Positions 3,289 through 40,300 of a stretch of 64,000 nucleotides of DNA are shown here, one piece after another. The first letter of the stretch is position 1, and every line of letters starts with the position of its first letter. The stretch is taken from the NCBI GenBank assembly GCA_964035545.1, contig OZ037768.1, forward strand, positions 5,984,741-6,048,740, read 5' to 3'. The DNA comes from Bugula neritina. Taxonomy: Eukaryota > Animalia > Bryozoa. The position numbers and the translations under genes were made by a program. The notes beneath the pieces are model-generated. The model had not been told where the DNA came from. It did not search any database and was given only the letters and a program-made list of their open reading frames with translations.

Positions 3289-4010
3289 AGTAGACGTTAT
3301 TTTTATGGCAGAAGTTGTTCAACAAATCAATCTCGGTGAAGTCATTGATTGAGTAGTACATAAACTCTGGAAATTTTCTTGCGGCAGGGTCGCATCATCT
3401 CTTTTAAGAAGACAACTCTATAAATAACACTCCGTGATTCGGACTTGTACTTCTTTAGATAATAATTTGTTGGTGCTACATTTAATATATCATAATCGAA
3501 TTAAAATCAAATTTGGCAGAATAACAATGTACTTATAACCTAAAAATAATATGCTGTAGCATAATTTTAAAATTGCATATTACTATTTAGTTCAAAAAAT
3601 TAATCAATTAAATTCATCAATACGATTTAAAGAACGGCCAGAGAGGTTAAAGGACACAACAGCCAAGAAATAGCAAAGTGTTGCAACACGTATGTTAAAC
3701 CGTAATAAAGTATTATGAGAGTCGATTTTACCAAAGAACGCAAACACTCCAGCAAAATACACCAGTACAAAATCTTAACGTTTTACGCGCGTACTTGCTC
3801 TCGTGTGCGCTTTTATTACAATTAATATTATAATTATCGTTACAACTTGCCGTACTTATATAATAACTGCTCACCCAAAGCAGTTCCAAACCACCAAATA
3901 TTCAACAACAGTAATTGCTCTGTTGACCATGCAATTAAAGTAGGCCTAAGCACAAGGTAAAAACTACGTTGAGTGAGAGTGTTGGCCAAAAGAAAAAGCG
4001 TATTGGTGAG
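3289..4010. promoter_or_regulatory. Putative bidirectional promoter and non-coding first exons of BRAP (-) and the PX-SH3-SH2 adaptor (+)
   Basis: Both first coding exons have an upstream splice acceptor (1619-1620 minus; 5073-5074 plus), so untranslated first exons must lie between them. There is a minus-strand donor GTGAGT at 3288 and plus-strand donors AG|GTAAAA (~3957) and G|GTGAGT (~4006). The region is locally CpG-enriched (TACGCGCGTA ~3784) and flanked by very AT-rich DNA. Confidence 0.5.
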
Positions 4011-5099
4011 TTGACCTACATTATCATTAAGTTTAACTTTGAGACTTAAGTATTTATCAATATCATTATCATTATGATTATCATAGGGATAATTGTTACC
4101 ATTACATTTACTATACTCATGATGATAATAATAATCGTTTTCATAGTATTAGTAAGATTAAATACAATTCAATAAAGTTTATAAATATACTAATCATTGT
4201 TATTATCTTGTTGATAAAATTAAATCTAAAAGTAAATGTGTAGGTTATATAGCTGACTTGCTTTTTTAACGTAAAATTCACAAATGGTATAATTCTACAA
4301 ATTAATTTTATACTATTACCTATCACTATCTGTTTTCACATTTAGTTTCACTGTATGCAATTATCATAATCATTATGATTATACATTCACATTGTACGAC
4401 TATAAGTATAACTATCACTATAAGTTAGAATCCTGTAAATGTAAACTCTACTGTTAGTTTTATGAAAACTATATGTTTTACAGTTTTTAAGGTTTAGTAT
4501 CTATACATACATCTATAGATGAATTTTACAGTTTAACTTTTATAGTCAGATTAAACAACTTGCTCATTTTAAGTGTAAATAATTCTCTCATCAACATTGG
4601 TTAACTGAAAGTTTCACTTTGTTATAGTCCTAATTTGACAAAAGTAGCCTTACCTATAAGTCTGTATGTACACTTGATTACAAACTTCTACAAGTTTCTA
4701 AAGCTAAATATTATGTATTGATTGTAAGTGTACCTGTAATAACTCTGTCATATATCTTTGTACTTATATACATTACATAAATCAGACTCATACCTAAACT
4801 GCATATGCTTTATATAAAAGTTGTAGAAATGTGAAATGCTAGCATTTCTCGATTAAGATTTTATTGATTACAAAAATTTCTTGAATGCTTTCATATTATT
4901 TATACAATTTTTTTGAAGACCTACATCTATTTAGGTAATTTGAATATAAAATGCTTGCTCATAAACATACTTTCTATATCTTCTTATTGAGTGTGTAAAG
5001 TATTAGAATTTCATGGCTTTTTATTTATGTTGTCACTTGGTTATTGAATCTACCGTGACTTGACTTCATTACAGCTGATGTATACTTAACTCAGCAATT

Positions 5100-8000
5100 A
5101 TGGCGTATAAACATTTATCTTCAGTCGAATGTATATCCATTGAAAAACGAGGATTTATACCAAACAGATATTATGTAAGTTATTTTTAATTTTAATCTTT
5201 AATCTGTAGATAACATGGTGCTTGTACATGTAGATACACATAGTGCACGTACATGTAGGTGCACAGAGTGTATGTATATGTAGATATAAATGGTGTATGT
5301 ATTACAGTGTAATAAGATAATGCTCATTCTTGACAATGTGTCATTTTGGTTAACAAGTCAATAAATGTGCTCAAGTCTCATCAGTTAAAGGGGTGAATAA
5401 TCTGACCATCAGTGCCAAAGTTATAGGAGATTATCCATGTGCCTAGCATTATGTAAAGACAATATTTATAGTTCATTTGCAGTTCCAACAGCAGTGTCTA
5501 TTTAAACACTAATCTATGCTTTATGTAACAATGATGACTTTTTATGTCAAACTTAGTGACTGAGAGTTCAATATAAGGGTTAAGTATCTTTCAGTAAGAA
5601 CTGATGGCCTTTCAACTGTGATAAGATATCAACTTACAGCCTTGTGTTTGAAATGATAGTATTTGCTTTAATCAGCCGTTACTGAGTGCACAGCAGTTTT
5701 TCCTTTAACTTTTCATAGATTTATCTAATCCATGTCATGGCCTTAAGGTTTCCATTAGCTTCAAGTTTACTATCTTTTTGGTGTGTAGGTGTTGTATGGA
5801 TGTAAAAACACAACTAGTTTTACACTCTTGTTCCAAGTTAGGCTGTTACTAGTAGAGGCTTTTTTACAAGCTTTAAATTTTTAGTCCACTTATGTATTTC
5901 TCTCAAAAGAAATGGCATATAGAGTAGTTATCTGTAGTTGAAATGAAATGAAAAAATATTCATACAGCTCAGCTTTGAGATTTTTTTTCAACTTGCTAAG
6001 GGGTGTCAGATTTACAAGTATGCAGCGAGGGATGTTGTGACACTACTACTATGTAAGGTGACATCACAGCATGTATAAAGAATGACCCACATGTTCAGGT
6101 TTCACTACACCTAGTATAATATGCTGGGTGTAGTGAAAGCTGAAGCCTACTGCCTATCTTATTGAAATGAGAAAGACTATTTATTGGCCAACAACTTCCC
6201 ACTCTACTGATGGGCCACTTTGTCTTCGCTAATAGCATTTAGTCTTTTGTGTAAGTTGTGAATGAATGCTATGCTTGGATGACTGAATATGATTTGTAGA
6301 ATAAAAAAAAAACAAAAGAAAGTTTAATCAGCTATTAAATAACATAGCGACCTGGGAAGTATGTGTAGCTGTCTGATACTTGAAATGGTTGATGTTGGAG
6401 TGTTGAAATTTTAATATCATGTCATGTGACTCATTGTGATCTATAGATTGATGATGTCATAAGGCCTAAAGGTGTTCACAATTTACCTATAAAGTTATAT
6501 GTATGAATTCCATAGGTTTACATATTAATAGTGAAGTGGAGTGATGGAGACAAACACCCCATATACAGAAAATACTCTTCATTCTATGACTTTGAGGTAA
6601 CGCACATCTAGTGCACTGCAATCTCTAAACACATGCATAATGGACCCTGTGTAGTTTAGCTTCAGTCATAAATTCTATATAATAACTTTTGGGTGTTGAA
6701 TGGCCTGCTGCGTATAGATGGCCGTCTACTTCCTACTAATATTAACTCTTCTGCATTAGCATAGCACGTAGAAATGATAAGTATACGTTTTTACTATTCC
6801 TGAAGTTAGTTATGTAATGATAAGATTAATTGAGCTATAGTAGGCCAACTGTATTACCATCATCTAAAAAACCACTCACTTCAAGATAGGAGGTCCAATA
6901 TATTTTCCTAATAAACATTTTTGTTTTTCTTTAACTTATCTGAGTAATAATTCATTGGCTACTTTCCATCTTCCTTCAGCAGCACATTGCAAGTCTTAGC
7001 TCAGTAAATTTGGTTGTGGTTGAACCTTGATTAGAAAAAAGCAAAAATTTGTTTTGAGATGATCACATAACCAAACAGTCTTGCAGGGTGTTCTAATACT
7101 GACAGAGAGTGCTAACTGCAATGGGGTTGATGTTTCTATAGGATGATCTGTAAATAGTTGCAAGCTTTTTCAATAAGTTCACCTGCCTAGACAATCTTGT
7201 TAAACTTAAACAGATGGGCAACTAGTTTTTAAGGCTGACCATTGAAATTCCATTGCCTTGAATTATTACAAGGTTTTTTTCTGGTTTTAATATTAACCAG
7301 CTCAACCTTTGAACTTGCAAATATGATATGATGATTTTACAGAAAATGCTTCATGACAGAATTGGTCACAAAAGTAGTATCCCAGAACTGCCTGGTAAGT
7401 ATTGTGTGCTACCATAATATGTAACTGTGTTATGTCTTCATGCACTATAAATAAAAACACTTTTGCATTGTGAAAACATAGTTGCATGTTTTTATAACTT
7501 TGTTATTGTCTCATGACATAATAGAATGTGACTAACTTCCATATTGTTTACTGAATTAGAAGTACTCAACATTATGTAATTCTTATTTATAGATAGAATG
7601 TAATAATAGCAGATTGGGTTGAGTTGTTATCTACACTTCCATATTGTTCACTGAATTAGAAGTACTCAACATTATGTAATTCTTGGCATAGTTTTGGGGA
7701 GTATGAAGTGTGCTCATTCTCTTCTGAAATCATTACTTATTTATAGATATAGAATGTAATAATAGCAGATTGGGTTGAATCCTTATCTACACTCAACTAT
7801 TAGCTAATATTTTAAACTAAAAACAAGCTTATCAAATAGACCAACATTTTTATTGCTGGTAAGTTGGCCAAAGGGAAGCTGCTGTGAATGAGATTTTCTA
7901 TAAACAAGCTTTAGCCAATCAGTGAAGAGTTTGATTAATCACTGTTTACATCATCTATAATTGAAGTTAAAATAATATTAGGGATTCTATATGCACTTCC

Positions 8001-11000
8001 TGTTGCCAAGTGGTCAGAAAACAGCACCAATATTTTTGCTATGCACATCAGCTGCTGTGATGGGGTGATAAGGTGGCAGCGTGGGTTAATAGGGAAAAGT
8101 TATTAACTATAACTTCCTTCATCCCACACCAAAGGTGAATGAGTTGGCATATTTTGTGAGTATTCTACGTCAACTATACATATAAACAACAGCTCAATGC
8201 TATATTCACCACCGCTTGTTGTTTACTTTTAGCCATGAACATTCTGCAGAAAGCATTTAAAATAGAGAAAAACCACATTAGTGAGATAAATGAATTTTGT
8301 ATGGTGAGTGTATCTATAGTTACATGTACACAAATGGAAGTGTTTGCATGAGCATGTCCCATTCCTCATATCTAATCCCTGTTCATGATGATCTAGTACA
8401 GCATGCAAGCTCTGTTACTAATTGCACCTTTGGTTTTCCAAAATGTAAAGTTGTCTGTGCATTTTTTAGAGTATATTGCGGCTTTCGGAGGACATTGTTA
8501 GAAGTGTGGTTGTTTCTTCTTTCTTTGAGGCTTGGGCAACCGACTTTCCCATGGAAGATTCATCTGCAGAAAACAGGTTAAGCATTCTTTTTCCTTTGGG
8601 GAGGGGAGGAGGGAGAGGGTTGAATTGTTATTCAACACCTGTGTACTACAAGTAGACTAGTGTCTTATATCTAATCTAGGTAGTACTGTCTTATATATCA
8701 GCTTCTTTCTATCATCTTTATCAACAAACATTAGCTATTAAAATATAATCAAGAGCATTGTTGGATGTTATCTCTCAAACAGAATTGTATCTTAAGCACC
8801 TGTGAGAATTGTGTGCTGAATGATGTTTGACAATCAGCCATGTATTTCAACTCTGTGTATATATTTAGTTTACTATAGCTATATTGCAAGCACCAAAGAT
8901 AATATGCATTATAGAGTATTTGCAAGTCATGTACTACTGTGGCAGTTGATCTAAATTTAATTATTCATCTCTGAGTTATTCGTGAGCATGTACTAACACA
9001 AGGTTATGTATTCAGCTTTTTGTGTTATTCATGCTTGGCCAGACAGGATGCTGGGGTGTAGCAAACAAAATACTACATCTATCGGCTACGTAATAATACC
9101 CACATGTATGATTTGCTCACTCTAACCTCAATACTATTACATTCTACCAACCTTTACAATAATGTGGCAGAAATGTTTGAACTATCTTTTGTTTCTCAGA
9201 GCTTGCCCATTGGCGTAAAGGAATGTGTGTTATTATTTACTGCTTCATCAATTTTGACTGGTGTCAGATCAAATGCTTGATACACCCGTGTGTTGGTCTC
9301 AGCTAAATTTTTGTGTTGATGCCACAGCACCTGATTGCCCCAGTTTTAATAAGTGAACTACCAACTGAATGTAATGTCTTTCAACTCACAGATACCTGTA
9401 TGTCTAGAGGTTTTGCATCTTACAGTGCTGACTTTTATCTCATAGTATGCTTTTCTAGAAACAGAGCTTAGGAGAGTAATTTCTGGTATTGGTACAATCG
9501 ATCACTTCCCTCTCTGTTTATAGTTTGAATTCTAAAGCCACCTTGTAGTTGACTGTAGTAGTTGTTGTTTGAAATCGCTTTTGTGTACCAGGGCCAGCTG
9601 GATGATAAATTTGAACAATTGTTGTAGACTGCCGGCAAAGAAGAAAGATGCCAAGAAAAAGTTACCAGTAGATTCACCAAATAAAAACACATCTGTAAGT
9701 TGGTAAATAGGGGTTGTCCTCTTTACTAAGACAGTGATAGGACAACTCTAAAATTTTTATCATTTTCTCATTACAATATTATAATGCTTGTTTTCTAATT
9801 TCGTATTTATTTGGTTTGTATTATTAAGCAATAGTTTTATTAATTTAATTTTAGTATATTGAGCAATAATGTATTGAACAATTTTGCAAAAAAATAGTAT
9901 ATAGAACACGGTGCATCATAATATTATAATATATATATAGGAGCCACTCACTGAGCCCATTATACCTTCTGCACCACCGGCTGAGGATATATATGTTCCT
10001 GTTCAAGACTTGTCTGAATTTCGACCTCGTTCAGATTCTGCAGACGACGACCTTCAAGTACAAGTGTACGTCTGCATTATGAACTACCAGCCAGACAGTC
10101 CGAGAGAACTTTCCTTGGTCCAGGGAATGAAGTGCATTGTCCTCGAACGCAATGACGATGGTGAGGAAAAATTGATCTCTCTTCTTTTTTATTTCTCATC
10201 AAGTAAATTGGTAAATAATGATATTTTGTTCACATTTCTTATATGTGATCTGGGAAAGAATAGTCTATGTTTGCGTTATGTAATAATTTTATATTATATT
10301 AAAAATGTAAAAATTTTCACTGATTTATTTACAAATCATGTTTTTTGTAATGTTAATATACACTCCATTCTTGCCAACTGATTAGTTATTTTGAAATTGA
10401 AGTTACTATTTTTGAGCTTTCCTATAGAAAATACATTTATAATTGTTACCAAGCAAATCAATGTTAAACTATAATGAGGCAACTAATTCACTCAATAGTT
10501 TGATTAGCAGTGTGTGATGTCATATGATAAGCTGCCGATGTTTCCAGGTTGGTGGTTTATAATGAGAGAGTCTGACAGACATCAGGGTTACGCTCCCGCC
10601 ACGTTCCTAGTGCCTAGTTCACCAAAGCAGAGTATAGAGAGCGTTTACTCCGAGATACCTCCTCTACTCAACAATAATAATGATGTGGAAGCTGTAGCAA
10701 TGCAGGATCCCAGTAAGTGTGGCGCAGTCACAGTGATGAAAAGGGCGTAAAGCAATAGTTTATATAACAAATAGTAAAATAATAATAAATGCTGGTAGAT
10801 AAGCTGCCTTGAGGGATTAGGTGATTTTTAGTTTCATTATTCAAAACCTATACTTTCTTAACTAGATTTACCGATTTTTTTTCATCTAATTAACCGCACC
10901 ACCTGGTAACAAATTGTATGTTATATTTATAGTTCTAACAGCAAAGGCTGTCTGCTGTTATGAGGCAAAAAGCAAAGACGAGATTTCATATGCTGAAGGG

Positions 11001-14000
11001 GAGGAGCTACACGTGCTGGATATGGATAACAGTGGGTGGTGGAAAGTGAGGTGAGAGCATGTCATGTGTATGGAGACACTCAACCTTCACAGCTATATGC
11101 TGCAATGCAGTCTCTCTTGCATATGTGTATGTTTAATATGGTCTGCGGCTGCTACTGTTGTAATGTTCTCTAAATTCAGAAAGAATTTTCATAGTTTGTT
11201 TATTTTGTGTGTTGGAACAGCTACTTAATTTAAAAAGATCTTGTTTGGCAATTTTGTAAGGAAAAATCTGTCCTCAGTGGGTTTTATGGTTTAAAAGAAA
11301 AATGTTGTTCCTAATGGTAACTTTGCACTTGAAAATTAAGTTCATGATAATTATAGCTTAAAGTTGTATAAAGCTTAAAATGTTAAAACCAAATGTTGAG
11401 TTTTGTCAATTGGAGACAATAGGCTATACAGTTTTGGGTATATAATATGTTGTAATGCTACCGCAAAGTAACACAAATTGCAGTTGCAGTAAATATTTGA
11501 TCAAGTCTTTAATTGATGAAAATTTTAAATTGAAACATTTAATTGTTTATGAGTAATTGACAAATCTTTATTCAAATGTGTTAAAAGTTTAAAGCTCAAA
11601 ATCTTTTTTTATTATTTTGAGTATTTTCAGCAGAAACCTGATGTTGTAGCTATAAATATATCATGTTTACATACGTACGTCAGGAAACTGCATGTTCTGA
11701 TTGTCCAGGGTTGTTGTCACATACCGAGTGGGAGTATAATTACCAGGAACTGTAATTCTCTCTCAGTCTCACATTCAGTTTGATTCTATTTCTGTTACTA
11801 ATAATGACTTAAAGTCTTAGACTATGAGATCGATTACTTATAAGTTGTTACGATACTCGATACTCGTTTGTCAATATAAATCGTGATGAATAAGGTAATA
11901 AATAGAATAGTTTTGTATAGAATCCTGAATGCAGTTGACAAGGGTTTTTAGTAGGTGAAGTTTTCTTTCCCTAAACTAAAACTGCAAACTTTGTTGGACC
12001 AACTACTGGCTATATTATTTAATCTTGAGCAGTAAGTATACAGTACTCTGTACACTGTACAGTGTCTTTGGATTTGTTTCTAATGACTAGAAAATTATCT
12101 GTGCAAGCAGATGAAGTTTAGGGTTTTTAATTCACAATTTTCTTGAACCAAAATTTTTTGTAATTTATTTTTTTTAAAAATTGGTGTTAACAAGAGGTAG
12201 ACATCATTCTATATCAATTAATTTTTCTGATGCACCAAATCCCAAAACCTGTAATGTACAGTAACTCAGAATGATTGTGTAAAGGTCTGCTAAGGCCGAG
12301 CAATGACTCATAAAGGTTAAACAGAAACAAAGTAATGTCTAGTTCATTATTTAAGCTATTTATAATCACAGTGAAACATGTGTTTTGTAATCAAATTTTA
12401 GAATTTATTATAACTGTAACCATATGTTTACAATTTAATTGGCAGTGATGGAATTTTATTGGCATTTTTTCTCTGAAATGTAGCATCACATCTTTACCAA
12501 GATACTTTTTTTATTACTTTCACATTTAATATAATAGTCAAACAAACCAACAGTGTATGATAACTTATTGCAGCTGACCCATGCATACTTTAGCTCTTTT
12601 TGCTTTACATTGCCATCACATATATATGCGCCACAGCTGCAGTAAGCATAAATATCCTGCTGAAGCAACTTAACATATTCTATTTTACCATCTGTATCAT
12701 GTTACTACTGATAAGGGCAGATGCTTATCTTGACAGCACAGTATTAAAACAGAAAAAAGAACAAGTAAATGCTATCAGATAGAGTGAGCAAATTTCCCAC
12801 TCACTTAGTATACAGTCAGCCAGTGAGGCAGCTGGTTAGCGAGTATATAGTGCATCTTACCATACATATAGCATCTTAGTAAAGCAGATTTCTTCTCTTA
12901 CTCAACCTTGATTTGTTAGTATTTACACTGAGTCATAATTGCCGCCTTCAAGACTTTCATTACCTTCTCCTGCTTTCTGGTTGGTTGGTTTGGTTACAGT
13001 TCTGGCAACTGAAGTATTCAATTTGTTGCATTCTTGGTTCCGCTTGAATTGAAGAGATGATTGGTGGGTGAATCAGACTAAGTACTACTGGAGTATGCAA
13101 GCTGTACATATGGTATAACTAGTAATCTCTAGCCTTGACTTTGGTAGATGTCATGGTAAAGTTGGCTTAGTTCCTGCAGTTCATCTTCAACTTGCATCTT
13201 CCTCTGTCACCAGAACTAGCACAGTGTTTATGAGAAATAACTCCCTTTACGCTAGAAAACCACCACCAAGAAGGTATGTGTTTTATATGCATTAATTTGG
13301 ACATTGGAGAAGACGTGGTAAAGATGTACGTTGTGTGCACTCTTTAGATCCTCTTTTAAAGAGTGAATTGTTATTTGAAATGTCACTGTGATATCTTGTA
13401 AGCTGATAGCCCAAACATTTATCACTTTTGCTTAGTATTATCATATGTCATGTGACCTTTCTTTGCACTATATATTGGCTATATGGTTCAAGAAATGTCA
13501 TCATCGGTTATTTTTAATTCAAAATTCAGTAACTTATAAATAACTTTAAACAGGATGTGACTGAGTTTGTGTTATTTATGACTTATCTTGTTTAATTCTA
13601 TCTGTTTACGAATTATTGACATTACTAGTTGATATATAGTGTCAAGAGGTTATGAATCAACACTCTGGATAATTTACATACTGAGTTATACTCTATTATT
13701 CAACATCCTGTAATGCAGTCACAGGTTTAAATGTGAAATAATACTTTCTAGAGATCATTTAATTGCCTCACTTGGGCTCTACTGGTTGTCACATTTATCA
13801 CTTGCTGTTATAATACAGTGACTTCACCATGGGCAGGTTGTTTCAGTATTTTGGATATTGTATTTTCTCCAACAGGCAGCACACTTTAAAGAATATCGAC
13901 AGCGCGTCTGTGAAGGAGCTTGTAGATTCTACTAAATCTGATATAGTAGAAGACAGCGAACCCGCATACGCTACTGTTTCTGACGAGATGGCGGGACGAA

Positions 14001-17000
14001 AGGTTCTAGCCCCCAGTAACAAGGCTAAATCTGAGGGGGTCATCAACTACGCAGAGTTGGTCTTTGATGAAGCTGATAGAAAAAGGTGATTTATAGTAAT
14101 TTAGTTTTTACTGTTTTATATTTCTTTCATCAATTACATACAAACAAATGTACATCAAAATATCGTAATAGTTTTCTTTTTTATTTTTAGTATTAATTTT
14201 TCTTATAATTTTCTAATAAGTCAATATTATTACTTTCCATCTTCATGTTCTACCACTGTTGCTCAGTATACACTGCACATGTATGAAATGTTTGTTTAAT
14301 GTGCCTGGTGAACTTTACTCTAAGTTACACTGTGATTTTCCCCAACATCCATCTGGAATTGTCTCTCTTAAGTTCACTTCTGTTGTCATTGGCTTGAGTT
14401 ATATTTTACCATCAGTTCGATATTGAGTTTGATTCCCGCTACAATGTTTAGTGGGAGAGCAGTCGCCTTCGCTACAATTGACTGTTAACACGTGGGATTT
14501 AAAGGAAATACTGTTTACTGTCACGTCCTTGTATATACTACACAATAACATGATTCATGAATTCACCTGGGTGTAAGGAGAAAAATAGATTGTTGAAAGA
14601 ATAAAACTCCTCTTTTCATTCAAAGCTAGTAGACATACCAACTTATTTCAGTTTCACAGGAAGCAGTTTATGATGTGTCACTACTAGTTCTCCCATAAGT
14701 TAACCTCAACTTCTGTACTTGCTTAGAGTTTTGACTGAGCACTGTGACACCAGAATGCAATAGTGTATGAAGCTTTTTAGTGCAACTAACAGGTCTGTTG
14801 ATAAAAGCATTCCGTCTGTTTAAGAGTAACGCAACCACCCATGACTGGCTTGTGACACAGATTATTGACATACTTTAATCTGATAATTAGGACATTTGTA
14901 AATCTTTAACTTACATATTTCATGTTAGAATAATACCAATGCATGAATATTATGCACGGAATGAGATTGAGATAGTACTTATGTGATATATATTTATGTT
15001 ATTCAGAGTAATAAAACCCTCCAGCAACGGCGGAGTGAAAAAAGCCGATACAGTTATATATACTCAGATTATTCCAAGGAATGGGAGAAAACCAGATGAG
15101 GTTGGCATATAGCAGTATAAGGACTTATTGATTGGCTAGACGCTAGTACTTTGCTGTAGAGTAGATAACTCCTCTGCTTTCAGTAATTTAAAAAATGAAT
15201 TCTGATGGCAGCTACATAGATATCTCAAATACAACTCTTTTGCTTTATTACTCTTAAATTTTACAACATTGAGTTTTGTAACTGATTATATTGAAAATTG
15301 ATTACCATAGATGATAATAGTCCTTTATGATTATCATAGCTATTTAAATTACTCAATTGGTTTGATGCAGCCTGCCCCATCACCCTCATCTTCACCTGTT
15401 GGAAAGAGATTTGAACGTGGAAAGGCTATAAAGAAATTTGGTGCTAAGCCTGAGGAAGGAGAAAGTGGGAGGAAAACCCCTAGTCCTCCTGGCACCCCTC
15501 CAATGACCTCTTTAGTAAGTGTTTAGCTTTTCCTAAGTGTGACGCTTAGAAAAACTTTCAAAATATCAAAGGAAAATTTGACTGCTAGGCAAGCAACTAA
15601 CCGTGGGATATCTGTAGAACAGCTGTGCTTGCTTAGCTGCAGTTAAAGACTACTGTTGAAAAATTCTTTAATTTGCTGATGTTGATATTAGTCATATCAT
15701 AGCAGTTGTTGGTGAAACTATCAACAAAATTTTATAAAAAAATGGCTCTCACGGAGTTACCAAAGTTGCCTGTTGATGGGTTCGACTTTCAACTAGTAAC
15801 AATGGCTTGGAATCGGCTCTAAAATAATGTGCACAACATAGTCGCAGTCCTCTTTCGAAACTCAAGCTTTTTTTAAGTTCATAAAGAAATATTTTGGTGA
15901 AAGAAGTAAACGCAGTGTCAGCTGCTTGTGGTGCAGAAGTATCACACCTACCCACACTAATGAGTGGGAAGTAGTAAATATTCACCTCCTCTCCAATGAC
16001 AGTTGTAGCTGTCACCATATCTGTGTATGTGACAGGACCTCAAATAGTATACCGAGTTTTCTTTTATCTCTTGACACTTTATAATTGCTATTATTGAACA
16101 TAAACTGAAGTAAAGAAAATTAATTGGTTTTATACCTTCGTTTTAATTTATTACTCGTCTTGTTCAGTGTCTGTAGATTTGTAACAATTGATTGGCATTA
16201 CTAGAGTCTAAGAAATCATGTTCTACTGTGGCAGGACCTATGCCTGATGTAATAAAGATAAATTCCCTGTTTTATAGTGCTACTGTATCTTAGTGTTCGT
16301 CCACAAATTCACTTGAAAATTTTATACTAATTCGTTTAACACATTTTGTGTCAAATTTAAAAATTACTTTTTATGCTGACTTTTGAAAAAGTTCGGTAAA
16401 AGATAGAAACTTTGATGATTTCACTATTTCTTTATGTTGGTTGCCATGTACTATTCAATCTTTCAGTAATGCTGAGAAATGTAACTTCATTAGTACTTCA
16501 ACATGGCCTCCATGCTATAGCACACAGCTGATAGTTCTAGAAGCTTTATTTTACTGGTCTTATATACAAGTTTGACTGTAATACTAAAACCTACTGTTCT
16601 TGTTGACTAGATAAAAATCTGAAAACCCCCATGAGCTTGTCATATTTAATCCATCTTAAAATACATTCCAAGTGAAACATTTTAATTTTATTTAGTTCTA
16701 GTCTACTAGACAGGCAAGACAGTTCCTTCTACTAAAGGTTATGAGCTATTAAACAGTTGCGTGAAAGAAACGTGTATTTCTAGGAGCTGTAAGTCACAAT
16801 GTCATCATTTCTGTAGCCCCATGCTTTATATGATTTACTGTGATACAGGGCCGGGTTTCACCTGTTCCTTTGAAACCCAGAGCACCACGCTCCCAGGAAC
16901 CCACACGAAACTATGAGAATCATACCCTGGCACGGTCGACAGCAAATACCTCAGCAGCAAACGGCTCGGCAGCAAACGGCTTGACAGCAAATGGCGACAC

Positions 17001-20000
17001 CAATAACGAAGGTTTGGCTTACATGAGCCTTTCCTCTTGCAAATCTCAGGCAGTGAGCGACACAGGTACTGCAATGGTTTTACATTCTTGTAATATTCGC
17101 TGTGAGCCTATACTAGCATTGCTACCATACTGGCATTCTGATTTAATGCTGAGTAAGAAATTTGTCAGTAGTAAATTAATTTATAGAAAATCTATATTGT
17201 TTTAAGTTTCAGTTTATGACTTTTATTAATGACTTATAGAGCACACTACTCACTCCATGCTAAACTATAGAAAGAATCGTGAGTAGACACTCATGTTTGT
17301 TGGCTTTTACCTGCACTGCATAGAGTATAGACTGTAGAGTTTAAATTTGCAGTCATAATGCAATAGCTGTAGTTTGGTTTTGCTTCCATTGCTATGAGTA
17401 AATATTTTAGTTTTTATAATATTATGCTTTATATTTCCACAGCATAGCTTTATTGTGTGTCTGGTTTCCATAATTTTTTATTATTTTTGTTTTGAAATTT
17501 TATGGGAAATAATAATTATAGTGACTTTACTAGCAGCTAACTTTTCATTGCTTCTTAAAGTTTGTAATTCTTATTTGAATCTCAAGTAAACTGCATCTCC
17601 CATAGTTTGTATGCTATCTGCAGGAGGAAATGATCTTCTTAGATGTAAGCTCCTTTATTCATAGCATTATTACATGTACCCCTTTCTCCTATTCACCCCT
17701 TTCTTCCTACACCTATTCACCCCATTTGTATCGTTATCTGTTGGTGGCTCATTATTCTAAATTGAGCTAGTGAGTCCTGAGTGAATGAGTCAAGTATATG
17801 TACTTACATAAGCATACTGCATCTCTCCTACCCACCCCTACCAATTGTATCTTCTAATCATCCCATTTTTTAAAGAAAATTTACACTAATACAATATCAT
17901 GTTTCAGCGGCGTATCTCCTTTTCTTGTTTCACATCTCCAGTTCAAGATAAAACTGAATACCTTCTAACTACAACGCTCTCCTTTCGTTATTTTGGACAC
18001 CACATTATTGATAGAGTTGAAGAAATTCTACAGTCACAAGGGGGCTAGTAAATGTTTTGCTATGGCAGGGTGTTTATCAGATGAGATATGTGTGCAATTT
18101 ACAGATAGCTTGTGTTTTTTCCCAGATTATCTGAGGAGATCATCTATAGAACCTCCACTACCGCCAGCCATTGAGGCACCAACTCCCACATCTTCCTCAG
18201 TGAGTAATTTACCCTCTTTGTCTTCCACTGTCTAACATGATGTCTACATGCCATGTGCTTAATCATAAATCATTTTTCACTTACCAAACTGTTAGACATT
18301 AATGTGATTATTATACTCCAACCAATACAATTATATTAGAAATTATGATAACTTTTATAATATGTTATATTCATGCTTATATTAAACTTGTTATGCCTCA
18401 TTTAGCACTGAATTGCAAAGCTGAGTCAGGCCACCTATGCTTCAGCCAGTAGTCCTGCATAACATGCTGGTTTAATTTACATATAATGAGTTTATCTGCT
18501 TTGTTTTAGAAACTTGAATACCCAAATTACTTGGGTACACCTTTGGATATGCATATTGCACCATGTTACAAGCCTATGCACTATCTTATACACTTTCAAG
18601 ATGATATCCATATATTCCACATCTAAAGTAGATAATGAATTGTGTGTATTTGTGTAGTCTTGCAACTATATGCATGTTTTAGATAAATCTGACACCCAGT
18701 ATAGAATCTTACACACCTGCGGTCTCTACAGTTCAAGCTAAAGTGTCCTACGATGGGCCTAATATCAGTGGCATGCTTATGTTTGCTAAAGGAGATACAG
18801 CTATGCTTATGTCTAAGGTGAGGCCATGGTGCTCTCTAAATCTTTCCACTAAGCTCTTTATAGTTTCTCTAATTAATCTTCTAGGTTTACCCTTCAATAG
18901 TTGTCTGGTGTTGATTGTAACCTAATGCATTTAGCTTCAGTGGTGGACATTTTGGTGAATGCTAATTTATAACCATCATTTATATAGTGATTAGCAGGTT
19001 TTCTTGTGTGTGATTAGCACAAGTCACTTTAAAATTAATTATTTTATTATGGAAACTGGAAAGTAACAAACAATGTTGACAATTTTGTTACTTAAAGGTA
19101 GTAAACAGCGCCATTTATTTACAGCTAAAAGGTAATGACAATGGTTGGTGGTATGTAAACCTACGCGGGTTTGAAGGTTATGTTCCTGGCGCCTACTGGG
19201 AACCTGTCCCTTCCAAGACCCCACGTTCTCCAGCTACTAGACACCGCACCCCCCAGCCTGTGCCTCGTACTCACAGCCCCGCAGCACCTCCATGCCACCC
19301 AATCACATCCATTGTTACAACAGCAACTACTACAACAGCCTCCACAGTTCCTACGACAGCCTCTACAGTTTCTACTACATCCGCTCCCTCGATTGAAAGA
19401 AATAGCATGGAATCTGAGCTGTGGTATCATGGGAAGATGTCAAGGCCGCAATCAGAAAAGAAACTATCCAACTTTGGCAATGGAGTTTTTCTTATCAGGG
19501 AAAGCGTAAACAGAGTAAGTGACAAATGTTGTACCTAACTGTTGAGTTTCATAAATGTCAAGGTCGTGTGACCTACTATACAAGTAGGAAAGGGCTAATA
19601 ATGTTTAGTCTTTGGACTATGTACCAAACTTGCAAGTCTTTATTGCCATAGAAATAGAAACATTGAATTTTTATTCAGTGAAGTGAGAAGGTTTGGTTTC
19701 TGTTACTGTGTAATATAATATGATATAATATAGAGAGATATATTGGACAGTACAACATGCAACTGTCTGCTGACAATGCTGCCATAATTAAAAGTTCTCT
19801 TCTCTTGCACTGGTTTACTGCAGCTAAGTAGTTGTATTAATAAATGCGTTTCTAGCGACTCACATGCGGTGTGTCAGTTTCCTGGCATGGTCATAAATTT
19901 ATTCAGTATGGCGTGAAATGGTATCTCACTGCGATGGTGATAGGAATGGTGAACTTAGGGTTTTACTTATGATAATCTGGTTGCGAAATAAGGCGGAAGC

Positions 20001-21634
20001 GTAGTTGAACTTTCTGTTTACTGTACACTGTTTTCTAAAATTAGTTGATAACTTGTAACGCATTGAATACATTTACTTTTATGTTAAATTTTTGGATGTT
20101 GCACGCTTACTCGTTCGTCATTAGACACTGCGTAAGCCTACAATCCATCACTGGTGCCAGAAACATTCACTTTGACTCTAATTATAGACAATGTGTTGTG
20201 TCGCAGGCATTTACCTTCGTATGGGAAGGGATATTCCCCAATACTGTGTTCCATACATAGTTGTGCACAGCTGGCTTCAGTACAGTTGTATAATGTAGTG
20301 TTATTCTCTAAAATCAAGTGGGCTATGCGTGTGGGTGCTGTCATACATGTGTGTCCTGTTGTATACAACGAACTCAATAATTGTGCTGGTTACTGTAATA
20401 TGATAAATTGTCTTTTCAGGTTGTAAACACAAGTTTTAGATTAGTTTTAAGATTTTTTATATGGAACTTAGGGCTAAAACTAGTGAGCTGTAAATTTACA
20501 TTAGATTTTATTTCTTTTTATAGCTTCAACATTGTTAGCTTCTTAATTAAGATATTGTAGTTGTATAATTAAATATGTTTAAGTCAGTTTGGATATGATG
20601 TGAGTTGATGGTAACAAGTTTAAAACAAATACTAGTAAAAAATGTGTTCAGATTAAAAAGTAATTTCGCATCTAGTGAAATGCAGAGTGTGAGTATTCCC
20701 AACAGTATTCCCTGTTATGAGTGGAATATGTAGACTACATTCTGGGACAGCCATGTTGGACTGCTTTTTAACCTGTTGATATATGAATGTAGTATATAGT
20801 GTGTAACCTGATGATATATGGATGCAGTAGGTAGTATGATGTAGACTGTAGAGCGTATATACATGCTGGTTGTATTGCAGGTTGGAGATTTGACTTTATC
20901 AGTTAAATGGGAAGGCAAGGTGAGACACTTTCCTATTGAAGCTAAGGAAGGCAACTTCTATAATATTGGTAAGAAATATTCTCAACAGAAGTATATATGT
21001 GTATTATATCTATTATGGTTATTATAATGATGGATATTTGACTCTTGTTCTTCTTACACTTTTACAGAGTTATATAACTTTAAAATGTTGATGCATTTTG
21101 CACATTGTAGTCTTCATTTATTTTCTGAAAAATATCGTTTTGTGTTATACCAAATTATGTAATATATTACGTTTGGTGAGATTAATATATAATCTTCCAT
21201 CAATGTTCTGAGTTGTTGAAAAGGCATTTATATGTATGGGATGTTAAATTAGACGAGAAATTTATACCTTTACAGTAACATTATTAAATATTATGGTGCA
21301 TTAAGAAGTAACATCCCTGTGCGAACCCCTGAGGGCAAGGTTTTTTTAGCGAGTTAAAGACTTGTTACTGTTGTAGCAAAGCAGCAATTAGAACTGAATA
21401 CTCTTCCTAGCACCTATACATGAAAAGTATAAAATATTAAGATGCATCAATTGAAGTAACATTTGGTTTCCAGGGTTACAAGTAAACACAATTTGTATTG
21501 ATATGTGAATTATTTCAGGTAAGCACGACTTCAAAACGCTGCACGCCGTCATCTCTCACTACAGTAAGCATCCTCTCTTTTACTCTGAGTCTAATGACCC
21601 TGTCAAACTCAAGAATGCTGCCACAAAGACCTAG
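5100..21634 (+). CDS. PX-SH3-SH3-SH3-SH2 adaptor: p47phox/Tks (SH3PXD2)-like N-terminal half plus Nck-like C-terminal SH2, ~849 aa
   Basis: 19 phase-consistent GT-AG exons: 5100-5174, 6516-6596, 7343-7394, 8233-8303, 8470-8576, 9628-9694 (alternative acceptor 9592), 9941-10160, 10548-10712, 10933-11050, 13148-13273, 13876-14085, 15007-15100, 15371-15514, 16849-17065, 18126-18199, 18683-18817, 19125-19514, 20881-20968, 21519-21634 (2550 nt, ends TAG). PX: IEKRGFIPNRYYVYILIVKWSDGDKHPIYRKYSSFYDF...IPELP...INEFC...FFEA. SH3 domains: YQPDSPRELSL..DGWWF..GYAPATFL; YEAKSKDEISY..SGWWKV..GLVPAVHL; YDG..LMFAKGD..NGWWYV..GYVPGAY. SH2: WYHGKMSR..FLIRES..LTLSV..VRHF..HYSKHPLFYSE. Confidence 0.88.
5205..5300. 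repeat. Degenerate ~26-bp tandem repeat in an adaptor intron
   Basis: About four diverged units of the form TGTAGATACACATAGTGCACGTACA. Confidence 0.55.
6094..6144. repeat. Near-perfect 24-bp inverted repeat (hairpin) in an intron
   Basis: TTCAGGTTTCACTACACCTAGTAT-AAT-ATGCTGGGTGTAGTGAAAGCTGAA: one mismatch and two G-U pairs if folded as plus-strand RNA. Confidence 0.8.
7535..7792. repeat. Intronic tandem duplication of a ~100-bp unit; the second copy is ~55 bp longer
   Basis: ACTTCCATATTG...ATTATGTAATTCTT occurs at ~7535 and ~7635. CTTATTTATAGAT...GATTGGGTTGA...TTATCTACAC occurs at ~7582 and ~7736. Confidence 0.85.
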
Positions 21635-34362: not shown

Positions 34363-37300
34363 CTAGGCATCACTTCTCCGCCACTCCAAATCGGCATATT
34401 GTTGGTAAATGCTGGCTTCATCATTCACATTTGTTTCTATAATTTTTAGAAAAAAATCAGCTGAATGTTGAAAATGGTAGCTTTTTTAAAAATAATAAAA
34501 CATATTTTATCTGTTGGACTGCATGGTTGCATGACATTAGATATACTAGATATTATCCACCACCCAATATCCTGTTCTAATCCTGACCTTCCTTTTTATT
34601 TTAGACACTTTAATTTCAATAGCCTAGCTGCTAGTAAGGTTGAAAAAATGCAAAAAGCTGGAAATTCAATTCTGTTTATGATTTTTCTCCTCTGTAAGCT
34701 TCGTTTTCAATTATAATTAGGCCTACATAAATAACATCTACTAGCTACGATGTATAAAGCCAAATGTGAAACGAACTTAGATTAAGCATAGCAAATGTGT
34801 CAAAATACCATCTGAGTTGCTCCTGTTATTCAGTAATGAAAGCTGTTCCAGTTCTCTCATCATGTCTTCTATGTTGTCACTAGTTGCCATAGTCTCGAAG
34901 TTATCTGGTAGGGGGCAGCCCTTGTACCCACCGCCATCTTTGATATGCTTTATTAACCTATAAAGACGCCAAAAAGCTGCACACTTACTAATGACCAAAA
35001 TACTTCATCCAAACTCACTCGAATGTTAAGCATGAAGTGGAATAGTGAAGATGAGCTATCTTAGACGTGTTTTGCTGCTAGTGACCACAAAGTAATTTGC
35101 TTGTGATGAGCATTTCCATTGTATAAACCAGCCTTGGGCTTTCAGCAACTTATATAGCTTATTTGGAAACAAGCAAATGAAAACTTGCATCTACTGCATT
35201 GTATAGCATTCCTGTAAACAAGCCGAAGAATAAAATTACTGAAGTTACTTTTCCCTCCATAAAAATATATAATTGAGCTGGCAATGTATTCACTTCAGCA
35301 GAGCTTGTGTGGCATTTTCTCATTGTTTCACCTGGCATGTTTAGACATTTGTTCCAATCACATTTGCTATCGTGATTTTCACAAATATGTTTAGTCCTCC
35401 ATAAGTGAGTAAGAAAATATGTGTCTGTGATTTTCCTATTAGATGCAAGGATAGACTTACTTCCACCAGTTTCTATCTTGACAAAGGACATTTGGGTTGC
35501 CAATCACAATGAGTAAAGCTTTACTCCGTGTTACTGCCACATTAAATCTCTAAAATATAGATTTTATTAAACACTTAACCACTGTAATATAAAATGTGTA
35601 AGATAATGCTATCATACTCTTTTAAAATTATTTGCAAAATAAAATGTCCAGTTATTAAATATAAGAAGCATAACCTACGTCATGTTTTAAATGCAGCAAT
35701 TAATTTCAGTTAAATTGCAAATATGAATATAAACAATAACTTGAATGTTTGCAAACATTTTAAAAAAAGACTTTATATATCATCTAACAATTTTAATTTA
35801 TACCCAATCCATTTATTACAAATATTCAAAAGTACTGTTTAGACTTATTTGATCCACACGAAAAAAACTCGCGCTAGTTTAAAGCCCAAATCTGCATTAA
35901 AATTGTTTAAGCAGGCTATGAATCGCATACCGACAGTGATGCTGACAACATAGCTGCCAGTGGCGTAGAAAGAACTCCTATCATCTCCTATAGCATTTAA
36001 TTCATGGCACAGCACTACATGCTGTGCTAAATTAATGTAGATCAATAGATCACAGCTACTACCTGAAACTTAGTCTAAACTCACCATCACCAATTTTTTA
36101 CATATCTATAGATATTTTTGGATTTTCCACAAAGCTATTTATAGATACCTTTGGATTGCCCACAAAGCCAAGGTTGAACTTCCTGTCATGTTCTAGAGAC
36201 TCATCCTGACTCCTCACAGTGCTGATAATGATCACTTCTCTCTCATCTCCCTGGAACTTCTCCACAGAACCAACGGCAATCTTTTCATATTGCGTGGAGG
36301 TTACTCCTCTTTGATTTAACTTTAACTTCTTCATGGTGTCGACAATCTTTTTGACCTGAATCACCAGTTTTACAGTATATTGTTTATTATAACATATAAT
36401 TATAAACAATATTATATATGAAATGTGTAAACAACTAGATAAACTAACAACAAAGTGTCTAATTGAAGCCAAGAGTTATATCATATTGCTATAAAATCAT
36501 ATGATATAACTTACTAAACTTCTTCTATAAGCTGGAAACAGGAAAAAGCCCAAATGATATGATGATGGCATACTTTAGGGTACTTGTGATAAAATAAATG
36601 ATGCAATTCTATGCACATGCTTGATATACCCTACCTGTTGGTGGTAAGGAGAGATAACTCCAATCTGACGAGGTTCAACTCTAGGATTTTTACACTCCAT
36701 GAGCAACTGAACATAATGTCCTACCAAGTCAATTTCATTGGGATTGAACCAGGAAGGCGATGCTTTTTCTTGTTTTTCCTCACCAACTATTCCATGGAAT
36801 ATCATAGGAAAGCCTGGGGTTCCAAGTCCCTACAGGATGGTAACATTACTTGAAATACTGGAGGTAACCTACGAACGAATTTTTCACAACTATATTTTGC
36901 ATGATTATGCACACTACTTTTGCAACAAAGTTTTGCTTAGATCTGTTAGTGAAGCAATATATCATTTCAAGAGAGACAAAAGAGGGCAACATTAACGTCA
37001 ATGACTTATATTTAAATACTTGAACCAGTAACAGTGGTAGTAACACTGGCCAGTTATTGAAATGGTGTACACTACCTCCCATCGACAAAATCTTTCTCTT
37101 TGAAGTTGATCAGCAAACACCTGAAGCTCATTGTCATAAAACAGCTGGTTCGGAACTTTCAAGATGTCTGGATGTGATCTAAAGTTTTGCAGAAGTTTAG
37201 TGACATAGTTTGGGTTAAACTCCGGTGTGGTCTGATCTCTCTGGTACAGATTCTTGTTCATCAGCCTTTCTAGCAAACTAACTCCTATAATGTATATATT

Positions 37301-40300
37301 TTTGGCTCTTGGAATTAGTGCATGCAGCAGTGAAATAATTAAATGCTGGATTATACTACAGAGCCATTAGGTTTTACCTCTACTTATTTTATTCAAGTAA
37401 TTATATAAGAGGTTTGAAGGCATACAATTATTATATCTTGTAAATGAGTTCTACAACGATGTCAGGTTTAAGCTTCGTGACAGAGCAGCAACCTGGCCGC
37501 TTAGAAGAATTTAAAATTTTGAAAATCATGACTATTAGACAGAGAACTGAGACTGAGATAATGACAAATTTACCTAGACCGCCTTGAACTGCTACAGCAG
37601 ACCTAATAATAGGCCCAAGCTGCTTGGGATCCCCAGCCAATACCAATTGCCCATCTGGTCTTTTAAGGAGGTTGGCTATTGGTATGATAGTCTCAGGTTC
37701 AGTAGCATGTCCAGCCTCATCTATGAAGATGTGAGTGAAGTGACCATCTAATTCACCAGATACCAGTCTAAAAAGAGCAAAGCCTCATGACAGCAAATAT
37801 ATGTGCATGTGTGCAGTACAATGCAAGTTTTATTACAAATGACTGTCATGTAAGATTTCAAATGACATAAAATAATAGTCTTTTATAATACTAAAAGCCA
37901 TCAACAATTGATGCTATAATAAAAGAAATTTTTTAGACATTTGATAACAAAATTCTATAACATTAAAAGCTACCAACTTTAGTAAATTAACACATCTACT
38001 TTTATAATTAGTTGAAAAAAATATCTTATCTTATTGTAGTAGTAATAGACTAATAGTTACATGCAGACAAAAGTTACTAAATGATACTCTTTAAAGTTAC
38101 TAAATTACACATATGCCTCTAAGTTTCACATGATATCAATTGTCTATCAACTACAGCCCCCCCTTCCTCAGAGCTTGTATTTCTAAATATAAAAACCTAC
38201 CTTAGTACCTCAACAAAGTTTTAATGTAAAAGCTGAGTTTAAATTATACTTACCGACCAGCTGTCACTAGAGTGACAACAAGTATCCGTTTCTTCATCAA
38301 CTGCTCCTTGTTTGGAAAGTAGATCTTCTTATCTCCTCCTTTGAATGAGTGACTGAAATTGTCACTTCTGTAGTTGGAAACCTCCTTCACCTATAATATC
38401 AAGTTGAATAATTCAAAATAATTAACATGAGATTGTTATTAGGTAATACATGGAGCAAAAGCTATGTTCATTGCTGCAGGTTAACTATAGTTTGAGTACC
38501 AACCTGTATGCTCAGTCCATCAATTCAATTTACATAGGAAAAATTTTTTGTTGGTTGATATGATTCAAGATAACTGCAGGAAAATTTTAGTTTAGGGCAG
38601 AGTTAGCAATTTGTACTGCCACACTATTTGCACATAGCAATAGGCAGACACCATGAGTTTAAATTATATTAGAAACTAAATTAAATGTAAAACAAAAGCA
38701 TTTTATGTTCAAGTAACAAACTTTTTCAACATGTATAGTATACACCATAAATATGTTATTTAAATGAAAATACAAAAGAATCCATCGTTAGTCATTACCA
38801 TCTTTAGATGCATTGAGGTCACTGTGACGTTGTGGCTATGAAGTCAATAGTGGCATTTTATAATGAAAAAACTAATGTACAGTAGTTGACTGAATGCAAT
38901 GGCCTAAAAATTAAATTGAATCTTTACTATAAATTTATGTTATGTCTAGCCGATATATGCATCAAATTCAGGAGGTTATAAAGTGCATAACTAAAACAAT
39001 ATACAAAAATTCCCATATAAAAAATACCAAAAACTCTTAAAATCCAGTTGTGTATTGGTAATATAAAAGCTAATGGTGTGATAAGGACAGACCTCCTGCC
39101 TTTCAATAGCTGTGTATGTCCTAGACATAGCCTGCAATCTCATAATATCCTTCATGTCAATATGTTTCAATAGCTTTTCTGTAACCAAGTCCGCAGCAGC
39201 ATTTTGTGGAGCACAGGCCAGAATTTGAGAGCTTGGACATTCTCTGTACACCTGAAATACATCTGCAGCTTATGCAGTCAAGTTGCATTTAAAACTATTT
39301 GAGTATTCTTTGGGTCGCTGACCTAACATCATTTAGAATATTTCAGTATAAATTACATTCTAGTAAATTAAAGTAAATGTATCAATAGACAACCTAAACC
39401 GGGTTTAGATATATTCTTGTTAAATTTATTTGTAAGACTCATATATATAAAACGTGGCTGAAATAAACTACTTGAGTGCATATGAATGCACAGATACACA
39501 AATGTCCTGAAAAGATGTGATTAAGAAAGGGGACAATTCTCATTGGTTCTTGTACAATAATAATTTTCTATGATACCCTGGCTGCATAAATATACTATTT
39601 TGATTATTTATGAGTTAACAGCTACTATTCTTTAAACTTATAATACTCTTAAAATTAACTGTCTACACAGTAAAGCTGTCGGATATCACAATATTTTAGT
39701 ATTTCGCTCATATTATTTTTGATAACAGTTAAAATTATGTATCTGCACAGCAACAGAAAATTTTGCTGACTATTGAATATACCTGTTTGATGGCTTCAAC
39801 TAATGTTGTTGTTTTACCAGTTCCTGGAGGTCCAAATATGAGATAGGGGGCTGGACGAGACGTCCCTTTAACAATGTGCTGAACGGCCATCAACTGCTCT
39901 TTATTAGTTTCTATATCTTTAGTGAAAAGCCTGCAAAGAACAAAATTATCATTGAATTCATTATAAGGCAATGATTAAAATAATTTTAAATTTAAGTAAT
40001 AAACTTGCAGTGTGAACAGTATTAGTATTCATTTATATTTCTGATTGAAAAGTGCTCACCTTAAGCGCATGTCCAGGGGACTCTGAGATGACACGTTTGG
40101 CATCTTTTCTGCAACAGGAAACAGGATTTCTTTATAGGAGTCTGTCTTAGAGATGGCACGGTGTGCAACTTCTTGAGGCAACGGATTAATAAGAAACTGG
40201 ATTGTGTGTTTGGAGCCATTTATAAAGTTATCTCTAAATCTAAACAACAAAATGTATGGCAATTAGCAGAAGATAATGCAAATATGATTTTAATTTGTTC

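Follow-up and report, generated by a model that had tools for sequence, protein, structure and literature searches.

A p47phox/Tks-type gene with an SH2 domain in Bugula neritina: a candidate phosphotyrosine docking scaffold

Introduction

What is the role of a protein that carries the domains of an NADPH oxidase (NOX) organizer and a phosphotyrosine-binding SH2 domain on a single chain? The question is raised by a gene at 5100–21634 (+ strand) of a 64,000-nucleotide stretch of the genome of the bryozoan Bugula neritina (contig OZ037768.1, positions 5,984,741 to 6,048,740), referred to hereafter as the window, the predicted product of which has the domain order PX-SH3-SH3-PPPRR-Tyr/Pro-rich-SH3-SH2. 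The first-pass annotation of this DNA had read it as a shuffled chimera of a p47phox/Tks-type core and an Nck-like tail. Sequence comparison leads to a different picture. The gene is, by its domains, introns and phylogenetic position, a member of a separate subfamily within the p47phox/Tks superfamily, one that appears to be old among invertebrates, is unnamed, and carries an SH2 domain and a conserved SHP2-type tyrosine pair. Its product may be a phosphotyrosine docking scaffold of the Gab/IRS/FRS2 kind, built on a p47phox/Tks core that gained an Nck-related SH2 domain; we give this reading a probability of about 0.55.

Results

A single expressed gene spans the PX and SH2 domains

The coding frame consists of 19 exons (5100–5174, 6516–6596, 7343–7394, 8233–8303, 8470–8576, 9628–9694, 9941–10160, 10548–10712, 10933–11050, 13148–13273, 13876–14085, 15007–15100, 15371–15514, 16849–17065, 18126–18199, 18683–18817, 19125–19514, 20881–20968 and 21519–21634, all on the + strand), with GT-AG introns throughout, compatible phases and no internal stop, and encodes 849 amino acids. 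The gene is AT-rich and intron-rich (GC content 0.45 in exons versus 0.33 in introns) and single-copy in the genome; a frameshift was looked for in exon 2 and was absent. Pfam, run exon by exon on the spliced model, matched SH3 at 9941–10159 (weakly), 10935–11048 (E 6e-9) and 19125–19514 (weakly), and SH2 at 19125–19514 (E 2.5e-6) and in 20881–20967. The PX exons alone gave no Pfam match because the domain (5100–8576, +) is spread over five exons of 75, 81, 52, 71 and 107 nt, each too short to be recognized, in agreement with the earlier explanation that short exons had caused it to be overlooked.

RNA-type contigs from four runs, belonging to four studies, were compared with 13200–19199. All joints predicted between the PPPRR exon and the exon with the end of the third SH3 domain (SH3c) and the start of SH2 were seen (13273>13876, 14085>15007 with loose ends, 15100>15371, 15514>16849, 17065>18126, 18199>18683 and 18817>19125), and in three of the four runs the introns had no coverage. 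Individual contigs, 1959 and 1974 nt long, started in exon 12 and reached the SH3/SH2 exon, through six consecutive exons. The reads were 90–99% identical to the window, and so come from a diverged population or a sister species. These joints bear on the alternative that two neighbouring genes, a PX-SH3-SH3 organizer and a separate SH3-SH2 adaptor, have been run together in the model. In its favour, joints were compared only from 13200 on, and amphioxus has the rear half of the protein alone. However, the RNA links the PPPRR exon, which also contains the end of the second SH3 domain (SH3b), to the SH2 exon, and full-length relatives carry PX and SH2 in one chain. The two-gene reading is nearly excluded by these joints and single-chain relatives, and was rejected. 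The region 5100–21634 is one real, expressed gene, as the first-pass annotation had proposed from the continuity of the spliced frame.

An SHP2-type tyrosine pair is conserved in the family

Relatives of the gene were collected by a large homology search and a second word search. The full PX, SH3 and SH2 complement is present in Lingula anatina XP_013417761 (918 amino acids, 12 isoforms, labelled SH3 and PX domain-containing protein 2A) and Capitella teleta ELT99001 (788 amino acids); Priapulus caudatus XP_014664968 (857 amino acids) also has PX, SH3 and SH2, its PX being weak. A spliced contig from run SRR3401642 contains a 701-codon open reading frame with PX, two SH3 domains and SH2, Owenia CAH1802253 and Ridgeia KAK2177778 are partial models, and the Branchiostoma (amphioxus) proteins are a PX-less form with the tyrosine pair, SH3 and SH2. 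In the databases these proteins are labelled SH3PXD2A-like or uncharacterized. A word search with exon 18 detected close genomic fragments that are 45–88% identical and share the exon layout; ENA record BRYA16-1 carries a close relative of the gene, and the nearest named relatives are lophotrochozoan.

The middle region of these proteins is unalignable between phyla. It contains a pair of tyrosines, 23–35 residues apart and in the SHP2 consensus, in all eight family proteins and in none of 14 Tks-like controls; when each protein was shuffled, such a pair arose 0–4 times per 2000 shuffles. The first-pass annotation, which noted a tyrosine/proline-rich middle, had not drawn attention to this pair. 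In the Bugula protein the first of the pair is Y419 (INYAELVF; 14042–14065, +) and the second, 30 residues later, is Y449 (VIYTQII; 15053–15073, +). Corresponding pairs are LNYTTINF/VAYAEI in Lingula, LNYTEIEF/VIYTEV in Capitella, LNYVQLDL/TTYSQI in Priapulus and MNYADIDF/SMYATI in amphioxus. Y419 has hydrophobic residues at −2, +1, +3 and +5 and an acidic residue at +2, and thus conforms to the SHP2 N-SH2 consensus (hydrophobic at −2, +1, +3 and +5, acidic at +2 or +4), for which IRS-1 LNpYIDLDL (pY1179) is the model ligand (PMC8007070). By this likeness, Y419 and Y449 are likely SHP2 docking sites, and a gene labelled SHP2-like from its resemblance is present in the genome. Tandem tyrosine pairs in Gab1, IRS-1 and FRS2 engage both SH2 domains of SHP2. 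Downstream of the pair, Y532 lies in a YEN motif (16906–16923, +) and is a candidate site for the Grb2 SH2 domain, the binding rule of which is pYxN; a YEN follows the pair in six of the eight family members.

Members of the family differ in front of and between these motifs. An extra, degenerate middle SH3 domain occurs in Lingula, Capitella, Owenia and amphioxus, and is absent from the Bugula gene and from Priapulus. No PX or either of the tandem SH3 domains (SH3a and SH3b) was found in the amphioxus models or in 10 kb upstream of them. Two of the database models depart from the genes they describe: that of Owenia fusiformis CAH1802253 misses SH3a and SH3b exons located upstream (7339–8594 of the sequence examined), and that of Branchiostoma belcheri KAI8505266 fuses the family gene to a neighbouring dehydrogenase. 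A word search with the alignment of the C-terminal half returned only unrelated SH3 proteins, and limited searches turned up no member in vertebrates, insects or nematodes; we know of no human protein with both PX and SH2.

Given the relatives in Lingula, Capitella and Priapulus, and the rear half in amphioxus, the full architecture is at least as old as the protostome ancestor and the rear half as old as the bilaterian ancestor. A lineage-specific chimera was rejected, since Lingula, Capitella and Priapulus share the layout. The shuffled architecture is thus that of a family conserved across several phyla, though unnamed, and the caveat attached to it in the first-pass annotation, that the architecture might be widespread in invertebrates, was well placed: it occurs in lophotrochozoans and a priapulid and, in shortened form, in amphioxus. 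The literature searched, a limited collection, yielded no description of a PX+SH3+SH2 protein, which agrees with the earlier statement that no characterized protein of this domain order is known, and look-alike clusters in the Atlas, likewise a limited collection, contained only NCF1, Tks, NOXO1 and Nck. A 2010 survey reports SH2 combined with FYVE, and PX is not among its SH2 partners (PMC2837644). p47phox-like invertebrate proteins with extra SH3 domains are known, with no mention of SH2 (PMC2121648).

The core belongs to the p47phox/Tks superfamily

A profile of the PX-SH3-SH3-PPR region of the family had human NCF1 (p47phox) as its best PDB match (E 3e-52), followed by the SH3 domains of Tks5. 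Both tandem SH3 domains of the Bugula protein retain the GWW motif. SH3a (10058–10615, +; about residues 191–247) is interrupted at G|WW by a phase-1 intron that the Tks-like genes of the same genome also have, and SH3b (10935–13193, +; about residues 281–334) by a phase-2 intron after WWKVR. The linker between them is about 34 residues long, as compared with 14 in p47phox (PMC8348221). The PPPRR motif (KPPPRRQHT, residues 356–364, with KPPPRR at 356–361; 13257–13885, +) spans an RNA-confirmed joint and is the counterpart of the autoinhibitory motif called AIR in p47phox and PTAM in Tks proteins; the Tks4 motif, likewise placed behind its second SH3 domain, is a ligand of the tandem SH3 (PMC8348221).

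The genome has three further PX-SH3-SH3 genes that lack an adjacent SH2, a tandem pair at C1:2.99–3.01 Mb and one gene at C1:0.24 Mb. They share with the gene studied here an 81-nt second exon and three intron positions (one behind the proline stretch of PX, one at G|WW in SH3a and one following WWxxR in SH3b). This intron sharing and the NCF1 match bear out the p47phox/Tks-type core named in the first-pass annotation. The two genes at C1:2993800–3007000 are a recent tandem pair (support 100/100) and have no intron separating SH3a from SH3b; the third lies at C1:235300–241700.

In a local comparison with PX domains of the Tks type, the PX domain reached scores of up to 51 bits. Its K44 and H85 occupy the positions of p47phox R43 and R90, where the relatives have K, S or T and mostly K, respectively, so that the canonical two-arginine phosphoinositide pocket is missing; the FPxEAG loop of Tks and p47phox PX domains is absent here and in all family members. 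By the rules of PMC6449406, canonical binding of phosphatidylinositol 3-phosphate by this PX is unlikely. In a tree of the core, which is unrooted, contains no vertebrate rows and has long branches for this protein and that of Priapulus, a 100/99 branch separated five SH2-bearing proteins from 14 Tks-like proteins that include the three of the genome. Standing apart from the Tks-like proteins, and bearing an SH2, the family is therefore not an orthologue proper of Tks4/Tks5 or p47phox, and with three SH2-less paralogues in the same genome the plain Tks orthologue was rejected. In sum of features, the gene resembles p47phox, NOXO1 and Tks4/Tks5 in its PX, tandem GWW SH3 domains, PPR motif, further SH3 and intron positions, and differs from them in its C-terminal SH2, its SHP2-type tyrosine pair and its altered PX.

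In another reading, raised in the first-pass annotation as a coupling of phosphotyrosine receptors to NOX assembly, the protein is mainly a NOX organizer with a receptor sensor of its own: SH2 would bind a receptor, the tandem SH3, freed from PPPRR, would bind p22phox, and superoxide would be made locally. The profile match and the kept GWW and PPR motifs favour it, as do the p22phox of the genome, which ends in PKNPPPRRP, NOX-type NAD-binding domains at four places, and the binding of Tks proteins to p22phox (PMC7663256, PMC8348221). The p22phox gene lies at C5:12370771–12371948, with its proline-rich C-terminal tail intact. The genome, however, already has three ordinary PX-SH3-SH3 genes, the core of the family is fast-evolving and its PX altered, amphioxus appears to do without the whole core, and no p67phox/NOXA activator was verified. 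In addition, a predicted structure of the tandem SH3 and PPR of the Lingula relative, made from a shallow alignment, matched p47phox entries first but at a root-mean-square deviation of 9–13 Å; the model did not take up the closed groove of p47phox, a weak point against that says little either way about such a groove in the protein itself. As the main function of the protein, NOX organization thus seems rather doubtful. NOX coupling through p22phox is possible on these sequence grounds, and would be compatible with a docking scaffold.

A probable gain of an Nck-related SH2 domain by a Tks-type gene

The SH2 domain (19416–21631, +; residues 750 to about 845) is encoded by three exons and has an intact FLIRES arginine (R777) and RHF histidine; its pocket residues are invariant or nearly so across the family. 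With a profile of the family SH2, Nck1 was top among single-SH2 PDB chains (87 bits), higher totals being sums over two domains; a PDB search with single SH2 exons gave nothing significant, PLC-gamma, Fes and Nck being mixed. Among the SH2 domains of the genome and the search matches, the Nck of the genome had the best mean score (143, the next being 119). This true Nck, at C7:6946100–6955930, has a phase-0 intron in its SH2 at the exact site of 19514|20881, an intron also present in all members checked (Priapulus, amphioxus, Capitella and Owenia), and in 13 other SH2 stretches of the genome that site is uninterrupted. In two SH2 trees, which contain only one certain Nck row, Nck lay near the family, but with weak support (35/73 to 70/78). 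Within the Nck gene, at C7:6954650–6955000, the donor site of the SH2 intron recurs in frame as an array where the intron begins. A locus at C4:8.17 Mb, at first taken for Nck, resembles a Src-family kinase and was set aside.

The SH3 domain preceding SH2 has another affinity. SH3c (18728–19208, +; residues 623–680) is nearest to the later SH3 domains of Tks-like proteins with a score of 46 bits for Tks SH3, as compared with 40 for Nck SH3-2 and 12 for Nck SH3-3. The gene is like Nck1, Nck2 and Dock in its C-terminal SH2 and the phase-0 intron, and unlike them in lacking the Nck-type SH3 trio and in its Tks-like SH3c. An Nck orthologue was rejected on these grounds, together with the presence of PX and of the true Nck elsewhere in the genome. 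With an Nck-like SH2 that shares its intron with Nck, but a Tks-like SH3c, the gene most likely arose from one of Tks type to which only an Nck-related SH2 was added. The first-pass suggestion of an Nck-like SH2 is upheld in so far as Nck1 is the closest characterized single domain and the intron is shared, but the trees are weak, and Nck as donor is likely, not proven; the suggestion of an Nck-type SH3-SH2 tail as a unit finds no support, SH3c being Tks-like.

The same domains bear on a further reading, akin to the podosome signalling suggested in the first-pass annotation, in which the protein is a built-in Tks-Nck pair for actin protrusions that links phosphotyrosine sites to N-WASP in podosome-like structures. 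Tks5 recruits Nck in invadopodia (PMC7663256), and an Nck-like SH2 beside a Tks-like SH3c would fit such a fusion. However, the SH3 domains, by which Nck acts on actin, have not been taken over here, a full Nck is present in the genome, and the tyrosine pair points to SHP2 rather than to actin regulators. We regard this reading as quite improbable.

Discussion

A docking scaffold would draw these features together as follows. At rest, PPPRR would lie in the tandem SH3 groove, like the corresponding motifs of p47phox and Tks4. Binding of SH2 to a phosphorylated receptor, or to a receptor-bound protein, would recruit the scaffold to the membrane, with at most a weak contribution from the altered PX. 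A tyrosine kinase would then phosphorylate Y419 and Y449, which would dock on both SH2 domains of SHP2/Corkscrew and activate it, and phosphorylation of Y532 would allow Grb2 to bind. The freed tandem SH3 and SH3c could finally take proline-rich partners, with p22phox among the candidates. Amphioxus has the pair, SH3 and SH2, apparently without PX-SH3-SH3, and the docking half can therefore stand alone. Gab/DOS, IRS, FRS2 and Dof likewise have a membrane-binding module in front, a long disordered middle, a tandem SHP2-type pair and a Grb2-type YxN. The gene differs from them in having PX in place of a PH, PTB or DBB domain, and an SH2 and three SH3 domains of its own; there is no sequence relationship, and the analogy is functional only.

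Several points weigh against this proposal. Motifs of this type also bind SHP1, so that the outcome might be inhibition instead of Ras activation. A docking scaffold has no need of the tandem SH3 and PPR motif, which are well conserved. Only eight relatives were found. The search pattern for the tyrosine pair was written after the family had been seen, yet it equals the SHP2 N-SH2 consensus in the literature. YxN sites carry less weight than the pair, being present in seven of eight family proteins but also in eight of 14 controls.

The family is an unrecognized branch of the NOX organizer/Tks proteins, which SH3PXD2A-like database labels have obscured. It suggests that a receptor docking protein unseen in vertebrates, flies and nematodes is present in lophotrochozoans, priapulids and amphioxus. 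A true FRS2 has been reported missing from molluscs and annelids (PMC7260276), and the gene is therefore a testable candidate for a link from receptors to SHP2 and Grb2 there. Such a broad spread lowers the surprise that a fresh chimera would have held, but an old, unnamed scaffold with a conserved SHP2-type pair gives a lead that is specific and can be tested. A direct link between tyrosine-kinase signalling and the production of reactive oxygen species is also possible. In its boldest form, the proposal would be of an undescribed receptor docking class, dating back to the first bilaterians and missing from the common model animals, in which one chain at a phosphorylated receptor holds SHP2 by the tyrosine pair and NOX-p22phox by the tandem SH3, so that local peroxide tunes the recruited phosphatase; this we consider speculative and improbable.

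Other features of the locus

Some details of the gene model allow for variants. The acceptor of exon 10 could be at 13133 or 13148, with the frame unchanged. A 21-nt in-frame candidate exon at 17624–17644 (+) was skipped in all RNA contigs compared and is probably unused. Within exon 14, a 15-nt tandem repeat of about four copies (16932–16995) encodes AANG-like units in the disordered middle. Inspection by eye found an acceptor AG 25 nt upstream of the ATG (5075–5099) and a donor-like site near 4007 (about 3600–4010), which suggests an upstream non-coding exon of the gene. Elsewhere in the window, three tandem MOV10/UPF1-like RNA helicase genes with AAA_11 and AAA_12 matches lie on the − strand (35100–43100, 47500–58200 and from about 62600), and the front part of at least one of them contains zinc fingers of the C2H2 type.

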